From Guillardia theta CCMP2712 (lineage: Eukaryota; Protista; Cryptophyta), in contig NW_005434651.1 in assembly GCF_000315625.1 (NCBI RefSeq), positions 354,045 to 418,044 on the forward strand: 64,000 bases of DNA, in the 5' to 3' direction. This document shows, one piece after another, positions 1 to 13,510 of this stretch (within the stretch, counting starts at the first letter, position 1; each line of letters starts with the position of its first letter). The notes under the pieces are model-generated. The model was not told the origin of the DNA. It did no database searches and saw only the letters and a program-made list of their open reading frames with translations. The position numbers and the translations under genes are program-made.

Positions 1-202
1 TCCATCTCGCTCTCGGCTTGATTTGCAGTCACCTCGTCGTCATAGGAGCCTCCGCTCGCAGCTGAGACGCTCGTCACTTCCACTCTCTCCACTCGCAGTG
101 AGCAAGACGAGGAGGCGAGAGCTCCGAAGGACGATGAGACCATTCCATCCTCGCATGCTCGACAGATTCTCTACATCTCCATGAGATTCTAGTCCTCCTC
201 CC

Positions 203-296
<94 letters not shown>

Positions 297-672
297 TCCA
301 TCATCTCCATCATCATCATGAGCAACAGCAGTGCATCTGATATTTTGTACCTCAGCGAGCTCGCTTGGACTCTCCCAGTCGTCGCTCACTTCTATCAGTC
401 AGTCAGTAGAGAAGGAGGAGGAGGAGGACAGAACGACCGTCCGCCGGAGTCTCGCGGGGCAGGAGGAGGCGGTTTGGAGGTAGGACGAGGACGTTGGCTT
501 CGTAGCGAAGGAGAGGAAGAGGAGGAGGAGAGAGAAGGAGAGCTCGTAACAACACAAGACTCTCTGCTGGAGCTCCCGAGGATGAGGTGAGGGCGAGCTG
601 AAAGAGCTGAGAAACCTTCTCTTCTCTGAGCACCTGCTCACACTCTTAAGATCAACTACGCCAGAGGACTGA

Positions 673-712
<40 letters not shown>

Positions 713-3582
713 AGACTGTTGATCACCTCTGAGGAGGAGAGGAGGAAGATGACGCGAAGACAAGCCGGAGGAAGTCCGAGTTGACATCCGCGAAAAATTC
801 GATCGAGCGAATGAGGGGAGGGAGAGGCTAAGAGGGTGAGGGGCTGTGCTTCCAGCTGGAGTTGTGCTGGGTTTCCCTTCATGTCGCTGCTCATCCAAGC
901 AGCGCTGACGGCGATAAGCTCCTTGATCTCCTCCTCCTTCCTTGCCAGCTGCCGGCACACACGCGTGAGCGAGGGCAGAGGAGAAAACTCCCACCTGATC
1001 CTTAAGCTGCTGCTGCTGCTGCTCGGCCATCAACAGCTTATGCTCCAGCTCGCGAGCCTGAAGAGCATAAAACAACAACAAAGAAGAAATCAATAGACAT
1101 TGAGGTAAAAAGGTAAGGTAAGGTGTAAGGTAAGGTAAGGTAAGGTAAGGGAGATCAAGGTGAGGTAAGGTAAGGTAAGGGAGATCAAGGTAAGGTAAGG
1201 TAAGGTAAGGTAGATCAAGGTAAGGTAAGGGAGATCAGTTTGAGTCCTGACCTGAGCCTCTATCATCGTCCCTCGCATATTCGCCGAGCTCAACTTGCTT
1301 CGCTCCTCCTGCAGCAGCTGCAGACTCTCGTCCCTGGTGCGATCTTGCACCGGAGCCTGACCAGCATCAGCCGACAAGAGAAGAAGAAGCAGAAGAGAGC
1401 GAGAGGAATAGCAGGGCCACGAGAGGGGGAGAGAGAAGGGGAGGACACATACCTGCGAGTGAAGTTTGATCTTCTCCATCATTCGATTGTTATATCCCTC
1501 GAGCTCCTGTGTTGCTTATCACTAGAACACAAGGAAAGAATCCAATGTCCTCATCTCTTATCCTCTTCATCCCCTTCTTCTCTTTCCTCCTCCTCCTCCT
1601 CCTTCACTCTCCCCACCCCCCTCCCTGCAATGCCTCGACTGCTTGCTTGCCTTCATCGCTCGCACAGCTTGCTCGCCAGCCTGATCTCTAGAGTCAGAGA
1701 GCTCCCCGCCACCCCAGCAGGACCTCGACAGCCTTGCGCTTCTCCTCCTCCAGCTGAAGCTCGCGCCTGCTGCTGCTCAGCCTCATGGAGCAGATGAAGT
1801 CAAAGACCTTCTGCTCTTCTCCAGCAGACCCTCCAGCTCCGCCAGCTGCTGCAGTTGTGAGCGAAGAGAAGGAGTGAGGGGGTGCGAGACGAGGGGAAGC
1901 AGGAGGAGAGCGAGAGAGTCCTGGGAAGGCAGAAGGGGAAGAGGGAGGAGGACAAGGAGGAGATGTGGAGGGAGCAGAATGCAGAAGAGGTGAAGCAGGG
2001 GAGTTTGTGAGGAAGATGATAGAAGAGGACGAGGATTCGACTTGTTGATTCAGCTTGTGGTTGGTGCTTGTCAACACGCTCTTCTGCTCTTGGAAGAGGC
2101 TGCTACTCGTCAGCGTCGCTGCTGCTGCTGCTGCTGCTGGTGTACCTCTCGCCCCCTGCTCGTACTCGAAGCTCCTCCTGCCCGTGAAGTTTCAGAAGAA
2201 GTGAGAGAGGAGGAGGAAGGGAGCGAATGACCTGCAGCCTTGCAAGCGCCTGCTCCAGCTGTTGCTTCTCTTGCAGGAGAATCTCCTGTGAAACACGTAG
2301 GGGTTAAGGAGAGGGAGGGAGGGGAGGGAGGGAGGGGAGGGGAGGGGAGATCATCGATTCTCGTGCAAAGCCGAGCAGGGCGACAAAAGCGTCTGACAGC
2401 GTGAGGAAAGGAAAGAAAGGACGCAGAGAAAGAGAACGACTCCAGGGGCAGCAGTAGCAGGAGGAGCAGGAGGAGCAGGAGGAGCAGGAGGAGCAGGAGG
2501 AGCAGGAGGATACATAGGCTTGTCGTCGCCCTTGACTGTCTGCTTGAATGTTTGCCGTGCTGGCTGTCAGCTCCTGCCTCACGTCTTACTTGCATCCTCT
2601 CAAGCTGAATGACACACATGGTTGAGCCTCCTCAGATGCTCCTTCTCCGCCCGCAACTCCTCCTGCTCCCCATCATCATCATCTCAATCATCATCTCAAT
2701 CATCCATTAATCATGCCTGGGCTCCCATCAAATCGCGCAGCTCCTTCCTGAGCTCAAAAGCCTGACACAAGTAATCAAGTCAAGCACAAGCTGTTGCTGC
2801 AGCGCCAGGACGAAAAGAAGCATGCTATACAAGCATGCTATACAAGCATGGAAGCTAAAGAAGCATGTGGTGTGATGGCAGGAGTGAGAGGATGGGCTCT
2901 ACCTCGTTCTGACTCGCTTCATGCGAGCGCATCAGCGTTGAGAGCCGATGGTTCTCCTGGGAGAAGAGAGAGTGAGGAGAGGAGAGGAGAGGAGAGGAGA
3001 GGAGAGGAGAGGAGAGGAGAGGAGAGGAGAGGAGAGGAGAGGAGAGGAGAGGAGAGGAGAGGAGAGGAGAGGAGGCACACGGCTTCGAGTCAAGGAGACG
3101 AAGGAGATCGAGAGAGAGAATAAGAAAGAGGAAATTGAAGAGCGAGGGCGATGGCGAGGGCTTCTGTGACCTTTTTCAGCTGCTCCACCTCCTGGTGGAT
3201 CAGTTAGACTCGTGTGTCCCCTTCCTCCTCCTCTGCTCGTCTTTGTCTTCTCCTCTTCCTCCTCTCACCGCCGTCAGAGCTTGCTGCATGCTCTCCAGCT
3301 TCGCTTCAGCTTCTCGAAGTCTCTCGCTCGTCCTCCTCGCCGAGTTGATGGCGGAGTCTCGCTGAGCAGAAAGTTCCACCACCCGCGACACTGACGCCAC
3401 CTCCTGCTGCTGTGCCTGATCGGAGCGTCACTCTCCTCTCACAAGACTCCATCACTATCATCATTATCATCATCTGCATCATCATCTTCATCTCATCATC
3501 TCCATCTCAATCATCTCAATCATCATTATTTCATCATCTCATTCGTCATCATTATCACCATCTCCATCTCCATCATCTCAAT

Positions 3583-3628
<46 letters not shown>

Positions 3629-3632
3629 TCAT

Positions 3633-3668
<36 letters not shown>

Positions 3669-5750
3669 TCATCATCATCATCGTCATCTTAAGCATCATC
3701 ATCGTCTCAATCATGATCATCATCTCAATCATCATCACATTCGTCGTCGTTGTCATCATCATCATCATCATCATCTTAATCATCATCCTCTTAATCGTCA
3801 TCCTCATCATCATCTCAATCATCATCATCATCATCATCATCTCCATCATCTCCATCATCATCATATTTCAATCATCATCGCTATCATCCTCATCATCATC
3901 ATCATAAACATCTCAATAATCATCTCAATCATCATCTCCTCCTCCTCTTCCTCCTCTTTCCGGACCCTCATCTCTTCCTCTATCTGCTTCAACCGCTCAG
4001 ACAGGAGGGTCACGTCACCTGTAGCTCTGCCTGACTGACCACCTCCTGCAGCTGGGCTCGTAGCTGGCTCACCTCCTCACTCCTACTCCTCACCTGCCCA
4101 GCTCGTCACTCCCTCCCTCCTCCTGCACCTCAGACCTCGTGGTCGAGGAACGTGAGCTCCTGCTGCAGCCGCTTGCTGGTGTAGTCCAGCTCCTGAGAAA
4201 GCTCGTCGGTGAAGGCGCAAGGGAACAAGCTAGACGCGGAGAAGACCAGAGGCGGGGAAGAGGAACAGCAGCAGAAGAGACATCAGCAGGAGGAGGAGCA
4301 CCTGCTTCTCCGCTTGTAGCTCGGTCACCTGGCTCGCAAGAAATCTTTTCTCTTCCTGAAAGATTTTTAACTTGCAGGAGACGAGGAGAAGGAAGAGGAG
4401 GAAGAAGAGGAGAAGCAGTGTGCCTGGAGCTGCGAGAGCTCGCGCTCCTGCTGCGCTGCTTGTCTGCTGAGGAGCTGATGCAAGTCGTGAGTACAAGCAA
4501 GACAGAAAAGCGAGTGAAGTACAAGGGAGAGAGATGGGTGAATGGATGGAGGAAAAGGGAGGGAGAAGCAGAGAAGTGAGGGGGAGGAAAAGGGAGGGAG
4601 AAGCAGAGAAGTGAGGGACGTCAGACCTGATTGTTGTTGAGGAGGTTGAGCAGCTCAGCTTCAGCGCTCTATGAGCTCACGAGTCAGGAGAAAGTCAACA
4701 AGAAAGAGAAAGGAAGGAGAAAAGAGAGGAGCCGGTAGGACAAGAAGAGCGGAGGAGGGAAGAGGAAAAGAGAGAGCTACGGAAAGGAGGGGAGCAGCAA
4801 AGGCAGGAGATCATGGCGACCTGACTGCGGCTCTCATACTTCCCCCTCACACTCTGCTGGTCTGCACGGAGCATCTCGACCTGGCAAGAAGTCATCCCTT
4901 CATCCCTCCTGCTACTGTCCTCCGCCTCTGCTGTCTCGCTCTCTCCGTCCTCTCGCCTCCTCTAGCTCTGCTCTCATCACTCGCTACTCCCTCCACTCTT
5001 TCAGCTCATGCCTCGTCACCTCAGCAGTCAAGAGCATCTTCCCTTGCGCAAGGTCGGCGTTGGTCATTCTCATCGCATCACATTCTGCATGGAACTGAGC
5101 GGCAGGAGGAGCAGGAGGAGCAGGAGGAGCAGGAGGAGCAGGAGGAGCAGGAGGAGCAGGAGGAGCAGGAGGTTGAGAGCTTCGCACCAGATCTCAGTTG
5201 AGTCACTTGTACTTGCAGCTTGCTCAGCTCCGCGAGGGTCTGCGAGGGCCTTCAGCTCAACCCCCGCCGGTTTCAAACTCTCACGCTCTCGTCTGCCCTC
5301 CTCCTCGAGAGCTCCAGCTGGTCCTGCAGGTTCCTCACCATGGCCTCTAGCTGAGCATTCTGAGACTCGAGGATGCGAGCCTTGGCTGCCGACATCTCCC
5401 GGGGGTCTCCTCCTCTCCTCTCCTCTCCTCTCCTCTCCTCCTCCCTCGCCTCTCCGTCTCGTCTGTCTCCTTCAAAAGGTCACCGAGACCAGTAATAAGA
5501 GCAAACTTACTCTGGCCGTCTCCTCCTCGCACCTCCCATCCCTCCCACCTCAAATCTCCCACCGAACGCCCTGAAGTGTTTCCCTGCTCAGTCGAAGTGA
5601 ACCTTCCGACCTGCAGCAGCGTTACCGACGTGACGCCAAGCCTCGCAGTCCTCCCCCTCATTTCTCTTCTCCTCCTTGACCCCTCTCCCTACTCCTCTCC
5701 TCTCCGCCTCCTGCACATTCATCTCATCTACTCATCTTCTCTCACATCTT
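1..5750 (-). CDS. Multi-exon coiled-coil protein of unknown function; runs off the window start, 5' end approximate
   Basis: Successive minus-strand exons give heptad-like E/Q/K/L-rich peptides (LKIFQEEKRFLASQVTELQAEKQ; AMRMTNADLAQGKMLLTAEVTRHELKEWRE; LARKEEEIKELIAVSAAW; LREEKVSQLFQLAL). They are separated by GT-AG introns, many filled with microsatellites. Confidence 0.6.
203..320. repeat. (CAT/GAT)n microsatellite inside an intron of the minus-strand gene
   Basis: Direct trinucleotide run lying between a donor near 350 and an acceptor near 190 on the minus strand. Confidence 0.9.
1112..1236. repeat. (GTAAG)n pentamer array with GGAGATCAAG interruptions, intronic
   Basis: Seen directly in the sequence. 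Confidence 0.9.
2974..3074. repeat. (GAGGA)n-type purine microsatellite, intronic
   Basis: Seen directly; it produces spurious EERRG ORFs. Confidence 0.9.
3450..3935. repeat. Degenerate (CAT/CGT)n low-complexity tract, intronic
   Basis: Seen directly; it produces spurious poly-H, poly-M and poly-I ORFs. Confidence 0.9.
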
Positions 5751-6436
5751 CCATCCTGTAGGCAGAGTTGTTTCCTTCATTTCTCCTCGCGTACTCGCCA
5801 ATTCCAGCTGTCATGTTGCCAGCATGCTAGCAAGAAGTTGAGACACAAGGCAAGGTGGTCGCCCTTACTACGTTGGCTGCCTTCCAGGTGGAACCAGCCT
5901 GGTGACGAGAATCAAGCAAGAACGGGGAGATCGAGGAGAAGACAAGAGAGCAGTACAGCGTGTTGCAGGTTCCTGGTGGAAGAAGGGAGAAGAAGCTCGG
6001 ACGACTGCTAGCGGTCAATCCTATGAAGAGGAAGAAACGAGACGAACAGGATGAGAGGTGAAAGCGAATGATGTGTAAGTCGGAGGAAGGAAGCCTGCCA
6101 ACGACACTGATGACTGATCAGAGAACAGCATCAACAAAAGCTTCACCGTCTGTGTTGTCACCAGCAGGAAGAGCTTTGCTTGGCCTCGTGCCTCGAACTG
6201 AAGAGATGTTTCGGCTGATCGCCATGTGGGAGAGAGCAGGCGGCTAAGACACCTGAAGACTTGATGAGATGCGACAGGTGGATGAGGTGGCGACAGAAGT
6301 GAGGAGCGAGAGAGAGGAGGAGGCAGAAGAAACGATGGAAGAGATCACAAGGGAAGGTAAGAGGGATGTAAGGATGGAGGTAATTTGGACACATTATGAA
6401 GGATGGGAGTACTGCAAGTGACGAGATGATCACGAG

Positions 6437-6550
6437 CGAGATGAGGTGTATATGTGCGTATGTGATGTGAAGAGCAACGAGATGAGGTGTATATGTTGGT
6501 ATGTGATGTGAAGAGCAACGAGATGAGGTGTATATGTTGGTATGTGATGT
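6437..6550. repeat. 41-bp tandem repeat, about 2.8 copies (CGAGATGAGGTGTATATGTTGGTATGTGATGTGAAGAGCAA)
   Basis: Copies start at about 6437, 6478 and 6519. Confidence 0.85.
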
Positions 6551-6777
6551 AGTAGTATTGGTATGTGATGTATATGAAGAGCGTTGGTATGTGTGTATCT
6601 TCCTCTCAAGCGACAGCGGGAATTTTGACTAGGCAACGGTCAAACGAGTGAGACAAGCGCGCCTCAGCATCCTCAGCTCTTGCTGTCCTTCTAGAGAGTC
6701 TTAAGATGCTCTGAGGCAGGCTTGTTGATAGCTACCAGTATCCCACTGAGACCGTCATGGCAGGGCTCCGGTGAAGC

Positions 6778-9700
6778 TTGGAAGCGGGCGAGGGCGCGAT
6801 GGGGAGGAGAGAGGAGGAGGAGGAGGAGGAGGAAGCGGCACGACCTGACCTCACTGCTGAGGAAGAGCAGTCTCTGAGCCCAGCGACTGGCAGAGACGAG
6901 CCGGGAGGTCAAGCGACGCTTGTGGTGAAGGTGCTGGAGGGGAAGGAGTTGATGGCAGCGGATAGATCCGGGACGTCGGATCCGTACGCCATCGTTGAGT
7001 ATGGACGTGCGAAGAAACAAACACGAACTGTGAAGAAGGATTTGAATCCTGAGTGGAACGAAACTTTCTACCTGGACTTCAACGCAAAAGCAGAGAAAGT
7101 CTCGATAGAAGTGTACGACTATGACTTGATTGGGAGCCACGACTTTCTGGGGCGAGTGGAGATAAGCATGAGTGAGATGAAGATGGAGGCAGTGGTTCAA
7201 GACTGGTTCGACCTCAAGGTGACGTGCCTTCACTCACTCGCTGGATTTGACCCTACGCAGCCTCGTCCCTCGAAGAACGAGATCGTTTCTGGGAGCCTTC
7301 ACCTGTACCTCGCCATAATCCCCAAAGACAGAGAAGCCGATCTGAATCTGGGATTGGATGCTCATTCATGGCTTGATCTTGACTCCTTTCGAGCTAAGGG
7401 ACATGAAAGAAAGTATCACACCATCCGGATGTACTTTGCATCGACCTTTGCTGATTTTCAAGTTGAGTTTGAATCTCTGTATACGAGTGTATTTCCAAAG
7501 CTCTCTACTCTATGTCAGTTGCATGGGTACGAGTTCATTCCTGGTAGAAGCTTGTGAGGCAGATCAAGAGCTGACTTGGACTGCAGTGGTCATGCGGTAC
7601 GGCATGGATGAACGGATGGATAAGATGTATGCTCTCGATCCTCGGGTAGCTAGACTCTGCTTCCATGAGATCGCAGAGTGCAGGAGGTACTGCTGGCAGT
7701 TTCACTCGTTCTGTCTTGAAGCCTCCTCTCTCTCCCAGGATATCCCCCCGAGCAAACTTCTGCGCTTTGATTGGAGATAGATACGGGTCGTCACCGCTTC
7801 CCCCGTCCTTGGACAAGAACGAGTACATGGCCATCTTATCTCACGTGGAGGAGCAGAAGGAGGAAGAGCTCTACCAGCTCCTGGAGAGATGGCACGAAAT
7901 GTTCATGCCTCTCGCTCGCCCTCTGAACCTCTGCAGGTATAAGTTGGACGAGAATCAGTCCCCCAACCGGGTGCTCCTTCAGAGCGCGGACGGCAAGATC
8001 TCACCTTCCGCCGGCCCTGGAACTTCTGAGCACAAAGAGTGGGAGAGCATCGAGAGAAAACTGTTCGAAGGTCTTTACAAGAGCTCAAAACAAGTGCTGT
8101 TGGTGACAATCCTAGAGCGAATGTGATTGTGTTGATCAGGTACTTGCTTCCTTCCGAGTCGAAAAGTATGAGATTTCTTTGTTTGAACAAGTATAGGATA
8201 TTGTTATGATTGTGTTTTGATTGGATATCAATGGTTGTGATAGGAACTGTCACTTGGAATCCTACTACCAGAGGATTCAGCAGAGCACACACTATGCGTG
8301 ATTCGATCGGTTTCAAACATGCGAATAGTCAATACGAATGCAGCAAAATACATCGATGTCGCCAAGAGACGCGGAGACAGCATCGTCAATGAGTTGAAGG
8401 AGGTAGAATTGCTTCGTGCGCTGACATGGCACTGAAAGTGTTCAGATTCGACCTGAGATGGTAGACGAGTCTCGTAGAAATCAAATGATCAGATTGAAAG
8501 AACGGATTGCAAGAAAGATTGGAAACAGGCATGTTCTCAATCATCTTCTCAATCATATTCTCAATCATATTCTCAATCAACTTCTCAATCAACTTCTCAA
8601 TCAATTTCTCAATCATCTTCTCACAGTCTATCTGCTTTTTCATGTGCCCGCAGTCTGACAGCCTTCAAGGTGTCTGCCTCTCGTGGGTCAATGGCAGGGA
8701 TGGACCATAGGCAGCGAGCACATCCAAGAATTGTGCGAGTCAGTCTACGAAGGTCTGCGCCCAGTGCTGGTGCAGGTGGTCGCGAGCTCAGGGCGGGAGG
8801 GTCTGCCTGACGGCGAGCAGGAGATGAGAAGATACCCGAGGTACAGCCTGCGGCGAGAGGAGGTGTGGGAGCACAAGCAGCAGCTCAAGCTCTGCCTCGA
8901 TGAGATGGTGAAGGCACCCAGACATGCGCCGGCGCTGAGCTGAAGACGCAGGAGCGACGAGAAGGGAAGGTGATGGAGAGAACCTTGGATTCGCTCCTTC
9001 GATACCTGAGAAGGAAGAGCGACGGCAACCTTGCGCCTTGCTTGCTCTACGGCTGCGAAGGAAGCGGTCACTCATCAGGTGATAGCAGATGCTGTTGCTG
9101 ACAGCGCGGACAGGAATGTCTTCCATGCTCGCCAACGTGGCGAAGTGGGCGAAAGAAGAGCTGTCGATAGGATTAGTTCAAGTCTACAGAGACGTGGGGA
9201 GGACGCCGGACTCTCTCAACGGGTGAGCGCAGGAATGAAAGGATGGTCGGTGAAGGCGAGGCAGGTTGAAGCTGCTGCACTCGCTGATGGAGGAGATGAA
9301 GCTTGCGTATCAAGCCTCCTCTGACTCCTCCCTCAACGTCTCTCTCCACGTGCTGGAGGGCAAAGACCTTCCCGCTGCTGATCGCGGGGGGACGTCGGAC
9401 CCCTACCTGGAGGTGAAGATAGGGGACAAGACCGTGACTACCCAGATCCAGATGAAAACTTTGAATCCCGTCTGGGATCAGAAGTTCTACTGGGAGAACG
9501 TGAGGCTCACTGATGTCATTCAGGTGAGCGTGTGGGATTATGACAGGTTCTCCAAGAACGATATGATCGGAACTTGCGAGATCAGCCTCTCCTCTTTCGA
9601 GCTCAACATCGTCAAGGACAGATGGTACTCCGTAGATATGAATAAGCAGGAAGAAAAGAAGAGGCAGTACGAGTACGACATCAATGTCAAAGTCATCGAA

Positions 9701-12700
9701 GCTCAGAATATCATTCCAAGAGCAAATCGAATGGATGTCGATCCGTACATCAAGTTGACGCTGGGAGATCTTGAGGGAAACACTGAGCATAAGAATGACA
9801 GTCAGGACCCTGTTTTTGACGAAGAGTTCAGCTTCAAGGTGAGTGCTGAAGAAGACCTGACGATAGAGTTGTGGGACAAGGGTCTCCAAGACTCTCAAGA
9901 CGTTCTCATGGGGTCTGTGGTGGTGCATACCACTGAGGTCGCTACTGATGCTCCCTATGAAGACTGGCTCGAATTTCTAGACCGAAATGCACGTGCGATC
10001 GGAAAATTGCACGTGGTGATCAACAAGAAGCAAGAAGAGATGGAGGAGGAGGAGGAGGACGTCGATAGTGGACCTCGCGTTCGATTCGTCGTCACTGTCT
10101 CCTCCAACACTGACAACTTGGAGGCGATGCTGGACGGCGGACCTGTGGAGGTGCCTTGTACCTACCTGGAGATGTGCGAGGCGTTCAAGCAGACGATCAG
10201 CAAGGCAACAGCCTCCAAGCCCCTCCTCCTCATGCTCGACGGCCTCGACCGTCTCAGCGAGAAAGACTCCGTGACCTCCATGCGCTGGATGCCTCCTGTC
10301 TTGCCGAGGTACGTCCATGCCGTCTTCACGCTCAACAAGACGGCAGTCGACAATCATGCGCCCGTGTATAAAGTGCTGAAGGATGCAGAGGCAGAGGTCA
10401 TCGAGATGGAATTGTTCAATGCTGAACATGTTCGGACATCGTTGAGCAAACTCTTGACAAAGCAGTCTCCCGTCCGAACTCTCACCAACTCGCAACGAAA
10501 CGCGCTTCTGAACGCGGTAGCTCTCAAGTCTTCTCCCGTGAGGATGCAGCAGCTGGGGAAGTTGGCGAGCATGCTTCCCAGCTATGCAGAGGCAGTGATT
10601 CTGAAAGGAGAAGACTCTATCTTCTTTCAGCTCATCCAGAGCTCCAAGGAGTTCGTCTGCAACGGCCGAGTCGATGAGTTTCGCTTGTGGCGGCTCCTGG
10701 ACTTGTTGTCGCGGTTGCCCTTCGGTTTCAGTGAGACGGAGATCAAGAAGATGCTCGGCGGGGGGATCCATGGGCTCCTGCCGGGCCTCTGCTACGCCGA
10801 AACTATGCTCGCGCTCTCTCCTGTGCTTGCAGAGCGACAGGCAGACGGTCGGCTGGTGTACGCACTGGGCATGAAGACGTTTGCGAAGTTTGTCATCCAG
10901 CACAGAGGGGAGGTAAGCGTTTCCAAAGACCTCCTGCTGTTCTTCCGCGGGCTGCCGAGAATCACGGATGGCAGGCAGCCTGACAGCAGGAGGCTGAGGG
11001 TGCTTGCCGCTCTCACGCGCCGCTTTGAAACAGCAGAGGAGTGGGAGCACTTCCTGACTGACCTCCAGCTCGTCGAGCTCAGGCTGGCGAGCGGTCACTG
11101 GTTCGACCTCGCCAAGGAGCTGAACCAGCATGGCCCCGGGAGGGATGGGGGAGCAGCAGACATCCTGGCGTTCTTGGAAGAGAACGCTCAGACGCTGCAG
11201 GAAGAGCCTCTAAGCATGCTCCAGATGGCTCTCAACATGCCGGATCACACGAGGATCTATGAGAAGGCGATGAAGCTGGAGAGGCAGCGGCGGAAGAAGT
11301 TCTTCGCTGACGAGGCTTGGAGGAAGCTGAAGCATCTCGAGCTGCTTGAGAGGAAGGACAAGACCTTCTCCTTCGCTGAGCTCCAGTCCTTGAGCTCCAT
11401 CCCACTCGAGCTCGCCTGGGACTCGCCTAAGCCCTCGATGCGCTGGGTCAACAAGCCGCAGACTCGCGGACTCTGCAAGCGAACCCTCCACGGGCACCTC
11501 GCCGGCACCTTCGGGGCGGTGTGGGCGCGAGGAGGACGGGGGGTGATATCGTGTTCGGAAGACCGGACCCTCAAGGCCTGGTCAGCCATCACAGGCGAGT
11601 TCCTGCGAGACCTGGGCGAGCACGAGAAAGCAATTCACGTCCTCGCATCCTCTCCGTGGGGTGAGACGTTTGCAAGCGGCAGCGAGGATGGAGTGGTCAA
11701 GGTCTGGTCAGTGAAGGGAGACTCTAACGAGGAGGAGGAGGAGGAGGAGAGCAGCTTCCCCCAAGAGATCCTACGAGTTCAAGCAGCTTCCAGGAGGATC
11801 ACGGGTATCGCCTTTGTGTCACCAACCTCCCTGGCAATCTCGTCGGAGGAGCCTGAAGTGAAGATCATTGAGATCTCGTCGGCGTCTGAGATCGCAACGG
11901 TGGTTCCCTTCAGGCTGGGTGTCTCTTCTATCGACGTCGCTTTCTACAACAACTCGATGCTCCTCGCGACTGCTGGTGGCGATGCTGTCAAGCTCTGGCG
12001 TTTACCCACGCTTGACAAGCGAGGCGGGCTATACGGGCACAAGAAGCGAGTGAGTGCGGTCAGGTTCTGCCCGTCAGCTCCAGTAGCAGCGACCGGCTCG
12101 TGGGACAGCAGCGTCATGGTGTGGGCTCAGAGCTCCCCGCTCGTGTGGCTCAACGTCCAGGTCCTCTCCGGTCACAGCGACATGGTCCGCTCCCTTGCCT
12201 GGTCTCCTCAAGGCAGCACCCTCGTGTCCGCCTCCTCCGACAAGACCGTCAAGATCTGGAAGGGCTCGGAGGCGCCCGAGGTGTCGGAGTGGAGGCTGGC
12301 GGCGACGATCGATGGACATACGGACGCGGTGACGGATGTGAAGTTTCATCCGCAAGGTCAGACAGTCTTGACGTGCAGCCGCGACAGCAAAGTCAAGCTC
12401 TTCGATACCAACGTTCCCTTCGAGACCTCCCCCGTCGTCTCCCACTCGCTGCCGGTGCTGCTGGCTGCTGTGTGTGGCAAGAAGCAAGTGGCAGTCACGG
12501 TGTCGGAGGATCAGGAGGTGAAGGTGTGGGAGTACACGACAGGCACGTTCCTTGTGTCGCAGAGCTCGAGCCACAGCTCCGGTATCAGTGCGATAGCCCT
12601 GTCGAGCGATGGGAGGTTCGTGCTGACGGGGGGAAGAGATGGGGCGATAAGGAGGCGCGAGATTCAAGGGCTCGCGCCTGCTGGTGTGCAGCAAGAGGTG

Positions 12701-13357
12701 AAGAGAGCGCACCAGGGAGGAGTGGCGGTGCTGGAGCACCACAGGGAAGAGAGCTTCCTGCTGTCAGCTGGAAGGAGCGACGGGAGGATCGTAGTCTGGG
12801 AATCGGAGGCTCTTCTCGACCTCGCGGTGCTGGTGGTCGGGGAAGGGTCAGTCATCTATCGGGCCCTCTTCTCCTCGGACTCGAAGTTCGTGATCTCAGC
12901 AGACGACAAGCGAGGGATGCGGCTGTGGAACATCGAGACAGGGCGAGAGGTGTTCGCTCAGACCCTCGGGTCCTCGGAGAAGCTTGCCAAGGTCGACTTC
13001 TCAAGCGACGGGAGGTTCATCGCCACTGTCAAGACGAGCAGCGAGCAAATCGAGGTGTGGGACGCGAGCGGGGGGGGGCTGAAGGGCTCGCTGAAGAAGC
13101 ACCAGGGGAAGGTCGTCGACACGTCCTTCTCCACTGACGGAAAGTTTCTGAGCTCCATCGCCACAGACAAGAACTTGATCGTCTGGCGTCTGAGCTCCCT
13201 GCGGCCCTTGTGCTCCTTTTCCCTCGCTCAGTCGCCTTGTTGCTTGTGCGCCTACCAGGCGTGGCCCTGCCTGGTCGTGGGCGATCAAATCGGCAGCGTC
13301 TTCTTCCTCACCTTCGTCGAGCCACAGCCTCCCGAAGAAAGCGACGAGGAGGACTGA
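6778..13357 (+). CDS. NWD1/NWD2/TEP1-like STAND protein: C2 - DUF4062-like - NACHT (split by two C2 domains) - helical region - WD40 propellers; multi-exon, true start may be upstream
   Basis: C2A: VKVLEGKELMAADRSGTSDPY..YDYDLIGSHDFLG. DUF4062-like region: IRMYFASTFADF..VFPKL..LCFHEIAEC..LIGDRYG..PLP. P-loop LYGCEGSG[M/H]S at 9045-9123 and Walker B LLLMLDGLD at 10223-10249. Many GH..WD repeats follow 11490. Confidence 0.88.
8534..8622. repeat. 12-bp tandem repeat (TTCTCAATCAHH, last three bases vary), about 7 copies, intronic
   Basis: Seen directly, just after a probable GC donor (AG|gcatgt) at 8529. Confidence 0.8.
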
Positions 13358-13370
13358 GACCCCAAGAGCA

Positions 13371-13510
13371 GCTTCACTCCTTGTCTTGTAGCTTCACTCC
13401 TTGTCTTGTAGCTTCACTCCTTGTCTTGTAGCTTCACTCCTTGTCTTGTAGCTTCACTCCTTGTCTTGTAGCTTCACTCCTTGTCTTGTAGCTTCACTCC
13501 TTGTCTTGTA
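13371..13510. repeat. Perfect 20-bp tandem repeat, 7 copies (GCTTCACTCCTTGTCTTGTA)
   Basis: Seven identical units with no spacers, between convergent stop codons at 13357 and 13537. Confidence 0.97.

Follow-up and report, generated by a model that had tools for sequence, protein, structure and literature searches.

A NACHT-like core split by two C2 domains in a cryptophyte STAND protein with a degenerate P-loop

Can the core of a signalling NTPase be interrupted between its two nucleotide-binding motifs, and what remains of the switch if it is? The question is raised by a gene on the forward strand of a 64,000-nucleotide stretch of the cryptophyte Guillardia theta CCMP2712 (assembly GCF_000315625.1, contig NW_005434651.1, positions 354,045–418,044), referred to here as the window. 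An initial annotation, made from the letters alone, proposed that the gene encodes a STAND protein whose NACHT NTPase is split by two C2 domains inserted between Walker A and Walker B, and read this arrangement as a candidate Ca2+-gated switch. As judged by profile matches and alignments, the architecture is real and conserved: two C2 domains interrupt a NACHT-like core of the NWD1 type between its Walker A and Walker B motifs. Its functional reading, on the same sequences, needs amending, the Walker A lysine being gone and only one of the two inserted C2 domains having a complete Ca2+ site. The account we favour, at roughly even odds (a probability of about 0.5), is that the protein is a pseudo-NTPase STAND scaffold that would be recruited to, and possibly controlled at, acidic membranes by Ca2+.

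One expressed gene of cryptophyte type encodes the whole protein. On the plus strand, 13 exons and 12 introns lie between an ATG at 6799 and a stop at 13357, giving an uninterrupted spliced frame of 1,971 amino acids (aa). The coding exons, taken from a spliced contig and its translation, are 6799–7216, 7259–7542, 7586–7684, 7737–7890, 7936–8093, 8140–8190, 8244–8400, 8444–8526, 8668–8771, 8817–8906, 8951–9065, 9113–9221 and 9264–13357; junction coordinates are as reported and may shift by 1–4 nucleotides (nt) to fit GT-AG or GC-AG. Transcript evidence comes from Logan contigs of three runs and the raw reads of a fourth, compared with window positions 6200–12150. A spliced contig of 5,953 nt, identical in runs X1 (2014) and X2 (2018), covers approximately 6804–13399 with 12 segments removed, and run X5 (2019) contributes fragmentary contigs and loose ends with matching junctions, including 9222/9265; the three runs belong to three different studies. 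That these are RNA runs is a guess, and a contig lacking 12 canonical introns can only have complementary DNA as its source. Ten of the introns are GT-AG and two (7891–7935 and 8527–8667) are GC-AG after the permitted shift, and 11 of the 12 are 42–53 nt long. Introns this short, the G+C content of 53% and the Teleaulax relative described below all fit a cryptophyte. Since the contig begins near 6804, the ATG at 6799 is a predicted start. The initial annotation had named separate transcripts for the exons at 6778–9222 and the exon at 9266–13357 as the outcome that would undo it; all 12 junctions are joined in the one contig, and the frame stays open throughout.

The core of the protein was compared with a family that only an exhaustive search recovered, word-indexed homologue searches being overrun by words from C2 or WD40 domains. 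With the post-insert part (window 10058–11425) as query, an exhaustive HMMER search of 1.84 billion representative proteins returned 274 relatives, the distant ones of which (P0093, P0096, P0102) are ordinary DUF4062-NACHT/AAA_16/nSTAND1-HTH_NWD1-WD40 proteins without C2 domains. A canonical core profile, made from 98 ordinary relatives and extending 40 residues upstream and 420 residues downstream of Walker A, matches the spliced protein in two collinear pieces. The first, the N-terminal half of the core (8973–9325, cut by introns 9067–9113 and 9223–9264), aligns profile positions 19–102 with aa 541–628 (41.6 bits); the second, the C-terminal half with the helical domains downstream of it (10118–11125), aligns positions 93–443 with aa 893–1229 (112.7 bits). 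When aa 622–903 are deleted, the two pieces become a single match of 154.1 bits, so the flanks do align to the family core once the insert is removed. The fold also resumes after the C2 pair, as had been proposed: the N-terminal half contains strand 1, the P-loop GCEGSGMSS (9051–9124), helix 1, strand 2 and helix 2, and the C-terminal half contains helix 3, the Walker B motif LLLMLDGLDRL (10223–10255), strand 4 (RYVHAVFTL), a winged helix and an APAF-1-type helical domain. Between Walker A and Walker B lies an insert of ~265 residues with two Pfam C2 domains, placed in a loop of ~10 residues that joins helix LLxSLxxQI (here LKLLHSLMEEMK) to the helix preceding the Walker B strand, that is, between helix 2 and helix 3.

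Upstream of the core, an N-terminal family profile (351 positions, 65 canonical relatives) matches aa 192–575 from end to end with 216.8 bits, which also validates exons 2–11. Individual Pfam models respond less clearly. On the stretch after the C2 pair, Pfam NACHT reaches 13.2 bits against a cut-off of 26.7 and matches the Walker B half only (profile 79–164), APAF1_C passes (28.3 bits, cut-off 22.8), and AAA_16 (profile 114–148) and KAP_NTPase match weakly; the small exon before the C2 pair matches the Walker A part of AAA_16 (profile 6–39). Among solved structures, neither the post-insert part nor the DUF4062 part had sequence matches other than chance ones to RPB2. By domain order and family profiles, the protein is a member of the DUF4062-NACHT-WD40 (NWD1/TEP1-like) STAND family, laid out as a C2 domain, a DUF4062-like domain, the NACHT-like core with two C2 domains inside it, a helical domain and WD40 propellers.

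The same arrangement recurs in relatives. All four of the closest database relatives (P0085, P0086, P0091 and P0095; 34–41% identity to the query by HMMER) have a C2 domain directly upstream of the Walker B half, their contigs share the same gene layout, and the P0085 cluster includes one EukProt transcript labelled as the cryptophyte Teleaulax amphioxeia. In L002, a contig from a JGI metagenome, a single open reading frame (ORF; 3425–5278) holds Walker A, the two C2 domains in turn and Walker B without interruption, and Walker A is contiguous with the first C2 in L004 (3494–4825) and in L008; the latter was added, together with the P0095-like loci L012 and L013, by a metagenome scan. The initial annotation knew of no protein with C2 domains inside the NTPase core and called for a proteome search; the split architecture is found in related metagenome contigs and in the Teleaulax amphioxeia-labelled relative, is kept in at least four or five diverged lineages, and is confined to one small clade among the 1.84 billion representative proteins. 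Identity between C2 domains is 44–50% at the same position across species and 18–38% between different positions within one protein. Each C2 domain is therefore closer to its own position in other species, which places the origin of the arrangement before the divergence of these lineages.

These relatives bear directly on the most prosaic explanation, namely that two neighbouring genes, or an assembly chimera, have been taken for one protein. Gene callers did cut the relatives on the metagenome contigs into separate ORFs, as such an artefact would lead one to expect. Against this stand the spliced contig across 12 junctions in runs of independent studies, the ORF of relatives that runs unbroken from Walker A through the pair of C2 domains to Walker B, and the collinear profile matches on both sides of the insert. 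The artefact was tested on these three grounds and rejected, and we regard it as extremely improbable.

Do the two halves still make one domain? The sequence folded was that of the relative L002 (3758–5275, alignment A3); MAFFT alignments A1 and A2 had been discarded after placing the canonical N-terminal halves on the wrong region. The AlphaFold model has a mean predicted local distance difference test score (pLDDT) of 84.9 and a predicted template modelling score (pTM) of 0.50. Cdc6/Orc1 (2qby_B) aligns with it over 183 residues at 3.4 Å (Z 15.6, range 1..489), Cdc6 (1fnn_B) over 197 residues, and Avs3 (8dgc_A) over 198 residues (Z 12.8, range 1..506). Since these aligned AAA+/STAND lengths exceed the ~149-residue C-terminal half, both halves must contribute to the match. 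In the L002 model, then, the two halves of the core pack into one P-loop domain, which answers the question that the initial annotation had put to structure prediction.

The protein contains three C2 domains in total. Pfam C2 recognizes two stretches in the large exon (E 3.4e-43), at ~9332–9634 and ~9674–10030, the positions first claimed for the inserted pair, and one in exon 1 (E 2e-28), which bears out the third C2 domain proposed ahead of the DUF4062-like domain. This N-terminal C2 domain (6913–7323, aa 39–161) is cut by a 42-nt intron (7217–7258) and has five of five Ca2+-ligand Asp residues. The first inserted C2 domain provides strands 1–7 at 9332–9634 (aa 631–731), and its alignment to synaptotagmin-1 C2A shows the full set of five Ca2+-ligand Asp residues, in LPAADRGGTSDPY and VWDYDRFSKND. 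Both domains keep all five ligands here and in relatives. The second inserted C2 domain spans 9674–10030 (aa 745–863) with an eight-strand fold in its AlphaFold model. The initial annotation had credited both inserted domains with all five Asp residues, which holds for the first; in the second, ligands 1 and 4 are gone in every member. The motif strings that it compared as 'C2A' and 'C2B' belong in fact to the N-terminal C2 domain and to the first of the inserted pair. Its suggestion of an internal duplication is not supported either, given that these two domains are 38% identical to each other and each is nearer to its counterpart elsewhere (44–50%), the shared motif being generic to synaptotagmin-type C2 domains. 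A separate observation concerns window positions 9318–9418, from strand 1 to Ca2+ loop 1 of the first inserted C2: ~100 nt are shared at ≥95% with another contig in X1, X2 and X5 whose flanks are unrelated, which suggests a paralogue and possibly gene conversion.

The topology of the insert is unusual in a further respect. Structural matches of the C2 copies have Z scores of 17–20, and the second inserted C2, modelled from the window sequence, matches Munc13-1 C2B with Z 19.8 and a root-mean-square deviation of 1.3 Å over 115 residues; in this window-sequence model the core is poorly folded, and the structure matches listed concern the second C2 only. The second C2 is followed by an acidic linker, QEEMEEEEEDVDS (10031–10069), acidic in all relatives, and then by a strand, GPRVRFVVTVSS (10070–10105), kept across the alignment as GPR plus alternating hydrophobic residues. 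This strand is predicted as such at a pLDDT of ~84 in both models, including the one with the poorly folded core, and its pattern recurs in the strand that closes each of the other two C2 domains (GSLHLYLAIIP and GKLHVVINKK). In the L002 model, single-C2 chains (3w56_A, 4y1s_A and 7pag_A) align across 87/90..357/368, with 107 of 108 residues of 3w56_A at 1.7 Å. On this reading of the models, GPRVRFVVTVSS probably completes the first inserted C2 domain as its eighth strand, which would leave the second C2 nested within the first, and the first within the core. A different assignment, in which a MAFFT alignment to RFIGxTP made GPRVRFVVTV a duplicated core strand 2, was dropped: both models put the strand with the C2 sheets, and it has the last-C2-strand pattern.

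What is left of the nucleotide-binding site? Replacement of the Walker A lysine by methionine or alanine is a classical inactivating change in P-loop NTPases. In the spliced P-loop GCEGSGMSS, Met573 (codon ATG at 9116–9118, placed by the spliced translation and the relatives' column) takes the position of this lysine, the absence of which had been remarked on separately in the initial annotation. Relatives read GPSGSGMT (L002), GPPGSGMT (L004), GPAGSGMT (L008) and GGHGSGVST (L001), and as the intron-free ones among them also read Met, the residue is not a splicing artefact. An intron of 47 nt (9067–9113, phase 1) lies inside the P-loop here, between GSG and the replacing Met; L002, L004 and L008 have no intron there. 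Over 123 aligned relatives, the lysine column contains K 117 times, M three times, and V, Q and L once each, all M and V falling in the insert clade. Lysine is thus present in 117 of 119 relatives outside that clade, and the later-found L008 also has Met, so that the position is Met or Val in every insert-bearing sequence with its P-loop recovered (the window and five distinct contig sequences). Two relatives without the C2 insert likewise lack the lysine (Q and L). The second acidic column of Walker B is D in 139 of 147 sequences and becomes Q in L001, H in P0095 and T in P0090, all three in the insert clade; the window itself, LLLMLDGLDRL, has both Asp residues (family consensus LDALDQL). 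The ST that the family has after strand 4 is replaced. The Walker A pattern GxxxxGK[ST] that characterizes the NWD1/TEP1-like family is therefore absent, while strict conservation holds for the P-loop glycines, the Ser/Thr (GxxGSG[MV][ST]) and the first Asp of Walker B.

Read against textbook knowledge of P-loop proteins, this pattern predicts lost hydrolysis and probably lost tight nucleotide binding: the core is probably not a working NTPase, and it may be unable to bind or hydrolyse nucleotide at all. One could argue instead that the core is a working nucleotide switch that manages without the lysine or with another basic residue, the C2 domains being passive membrane tethers that sit in a surface loop able to accommodate them and take no part in gating. 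The strictly kept glycines, Ser/Thr and first Walker B Asp suggest a continued constraint on the site, and a C2 domain has been reported as an N-terminal domain of basidiomycete NLR candidates (PMC4986451), both of which would suit such a view. The loss of the second Walker B acid in L001, P0095 and P0090, together with the replaced ST, points to relaxed catalytic constraint, however, and the Lys-to-Met change itself is of the inactivating kind, and we consider a working switch unlikely.

At the N-terminal side, the DUF4062-like domain (7414–8093, aa ~192–330, exons 2–5) was placed by the family N-terminal profile, members of which pass Pfam DUF4062. The contiguous relatives themselves fall below the Pfam threshold (L001, 15.4 bits; L002, 17.3 bits; cut-off 24.7). 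Two preprints from 2026 identify the DUF4062 family, also called 'NIR', as TIR-like NADases equipped with a catalytic Glu, and report activity for bacterial defence systems and for human TEP1 (bioRxiv 10.64898/2026.05.01.722283; 10.64898/2026.09.04.749371). The three Glu residues conserved in canonical relatives are kept, including that of LDKNEY (aa 296) at the expected position of the TIR-type catalytic Glu. An NADase output of the domain in this protein is nevertheless doubtful, given the residues replaced and the behaviour of the human homologues, both described below.

The C-terminal third is formed by WD40 propellers (11480–13354, aa ~1347–1971; Pfam WD40 E 5.2e-61, seven stretches, several propeller families). 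Runs of Glu/Asp occur at the N terminus (6808–6831), in the linker (10031–10069), in a WD40 loop (~12080) and at the C terminus (13330–13354). The N termini of relatives (L002 1445–2440; L004 2235–3023) begin with MG[RK]GSA, which may be an N-myristoylation signal; the window protein itself opens with MGRREEEEEEEE, a poor fit to such a signal, and its 5′ end is outside contig coverage. The only long intron (8527–8667, 141 nt, GC-AG) contains ~8 tandem copies of the 12-nt unit TTCTCAATCAnn. Upstream of the gene, window positions 5008–5574 hold a low-complexity ORF with an (SRR)n run, which is probably non-coding.

How might such a protein work? In the mechanism that we favour, the core would still fold as one P-loop domain, as the AlphaFold model re-forms it, and would no longer be a nucleotide-driven switch, hence a pseudo-NTPase scaffold. 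Ca2+ binding by the N-terminal C2 and the first inserted C2 would recruit the protein to acidic phospholipid membranes and might control its conformation; the second inserted C2 would be Ca2+-independent, possibly a spacer or a protein or lipid contact. A ligand or partner would dock on the WD40 propellers, and the DUF4062 domain would be the output, if active. In a type-I C2 domain, the N and C termini both emerge at the face bearing the Ca2+ loops. By this standard topology, the junction with the core should adjoin the membrane-binding surface of the first inserted C2, on its Ca2+-loop face. Coupling of the C2 domains to the core is thus geometrically plausible, geometry being no evidence for coupling, and control by Ca2+ and lipid is a plausible hypothesis.

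Several points weigh against this account of a membrane-recruited scaffold. The core model is that of L002, which is only 36–39% identical in the aligned region; its alignment has almost no rows spanning both halves, and with a pTM of only 0.50 the packing of the halves is a property of the model. The second inserted C2 has N/A and G at ligands 1 and 4, leaving three of five ligands here and two to three of five in relatives. With the lysine gone, nucleotide binding has probably been lost too, short of proof. In the DUF4062-like domain, residues that are near-invariant in the family are replaced in all members of the insert clade (R23 to F, D49 to V, W52 to Y, R74 to E and W94 to S, in profile numbering), and NADase activity of human NWD1, NWD2 and NPHP3 was not detected in vitro (bioRxiv 10.64898/2026.05.01.722283). 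Lastly, a raw-read RNA run gave two reads for the gene in ~6% of the run, which corresponds to very low expression there.

Some of the same facts would fit a core that lost its function first and is now a structural spacer, with the insert a neutral accretion and the protein a membrane-attached WD40 scaffold in which the C2 domains and the core are not coupled. The degenerate Walker A, Walker B and sensor positions, the divergent DUF4062 residues and the low expression in the raw-read run are what such a history would leave behind. Yet the core halves, the junction helices and the GPR strand are well conserved across lineages that are only 30–40% identical overall, the reading frame has no break over its 1,971 aa, and the C2 domains are orthologous position by position between species, all of which argues for selection on the complete arrangement; neutral accretion is rather less likely than the membrane-controlled scaffold that we prefer. 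A bolder version of the latter would have nucleotide control swapped for Ca2+/phospholipid control in this cryptophyte clade, such that the nested C2-in-C2 module opens or closes a nucleotide-free core at the membrane when Ca2+ rises and thereby triggers oligomerisation of a WD40-sensor/TIR-like-NADase machine. Taken as a whole, this chain of steps is improbable, and we offer it tentatively.

Comparison with known systems sets out what is new. The nearest are the STAND proteins of the NWD1/NWD2/TEP1/NPHP3 type, described in human (bioRxiv 10.64898/2026.05.01.722283), which have the same domain order (DUF4062 'NIR', NACHT, APAF-1-like helical domain, WD40 or TPR) and to which the protein is collinearly homologous, with 216.8 bits from the DUF4062-like domain to the P-loop and 112.7 bits from Walker B to the helical domain. 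It differs from them in the ~265-residue double-C2 insert, the extra N-terminal C2, the Met in place of the Walker A Lys, and Pfam NACHT and DUF4062 scores below their thresholds. Membrane-contacting elements inside a STAND-related P-loop domain are known from KAP and YobI (Tmn), which have transmembrane helices inserted in the P-loop NTPase domain; for YobI this is stated in PMC13001434, and for KAP the idea is carried by the title of Aravind et al. 2004 (Genome Biol 5:R30), as cited there. The likeness is one of analogy only: theirs are two or four membrane-spanning helices in an active NTPase (Tmn turns over ATP), whereas the element here is a soluble, peripheral C2 pair of the Ca2+ type in a degenerate P-loop domain, and Pfam KAP_NTPase finds no significant sequence relationship (E 0.15, 11.8 bits, below the cut-off of 20).

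The C2 domains themselves resemble those of membrane-trafficking proteins. In the first inserted C2, alignment to synaptotagmin-1 C2A places Asp at five of five ligand positions, the inserted pair matches C2A-C2B of the extended synaptotagmin (E-Syt) E-Syt2 (Foldseek E 4.7e-17), and the second resembles Munc13-1 C2B, as noted above. In synaptotagmins, E-Syts, ferlins and Munc13 the C2 domains form a terminal tandem; here they form an insertion, the second apparently nested before the last strand of the first, in a gene product that has no transmembrane, SMP or MUN region. A lipid-binding C2 domain and a NACHT-type STAND protein also come together in fungal NLR candidates (Dyrka et al. 2014, PMC4986451); their C2 is N-terminal, and an insertion in the nucleotide-binding core is not described. 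Nor did full-text literature searches on NACHT with C2 or cryptophytes, or on Guillardia with NACHT, yield an account of a C2 insertion in a NACHT core. By the alignments, the split double-C2 core is conserved in related cryptophytes; the pairing of C2 with NACHT and membrane inserts were already known, and the insertion of C2 domains in the core appears to be new.

To our knowledge, STAND and NLR proteins, universal 'sense, switch, oligomerise' machines of immunity and cell death, have a switch that is always described as nucleotide-driven. A conserved natural lineage that lacks the phosphate-binding lysine and has a Ca2+/lipid module at the centre of the switch would offer a natural setting in which to ask whether another signal can drive the STAND fold. 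If the account given here is true, it would tie the DUF4062/NIR NADases, a family recognised only recently, to Ca2+ and membrane signalling.

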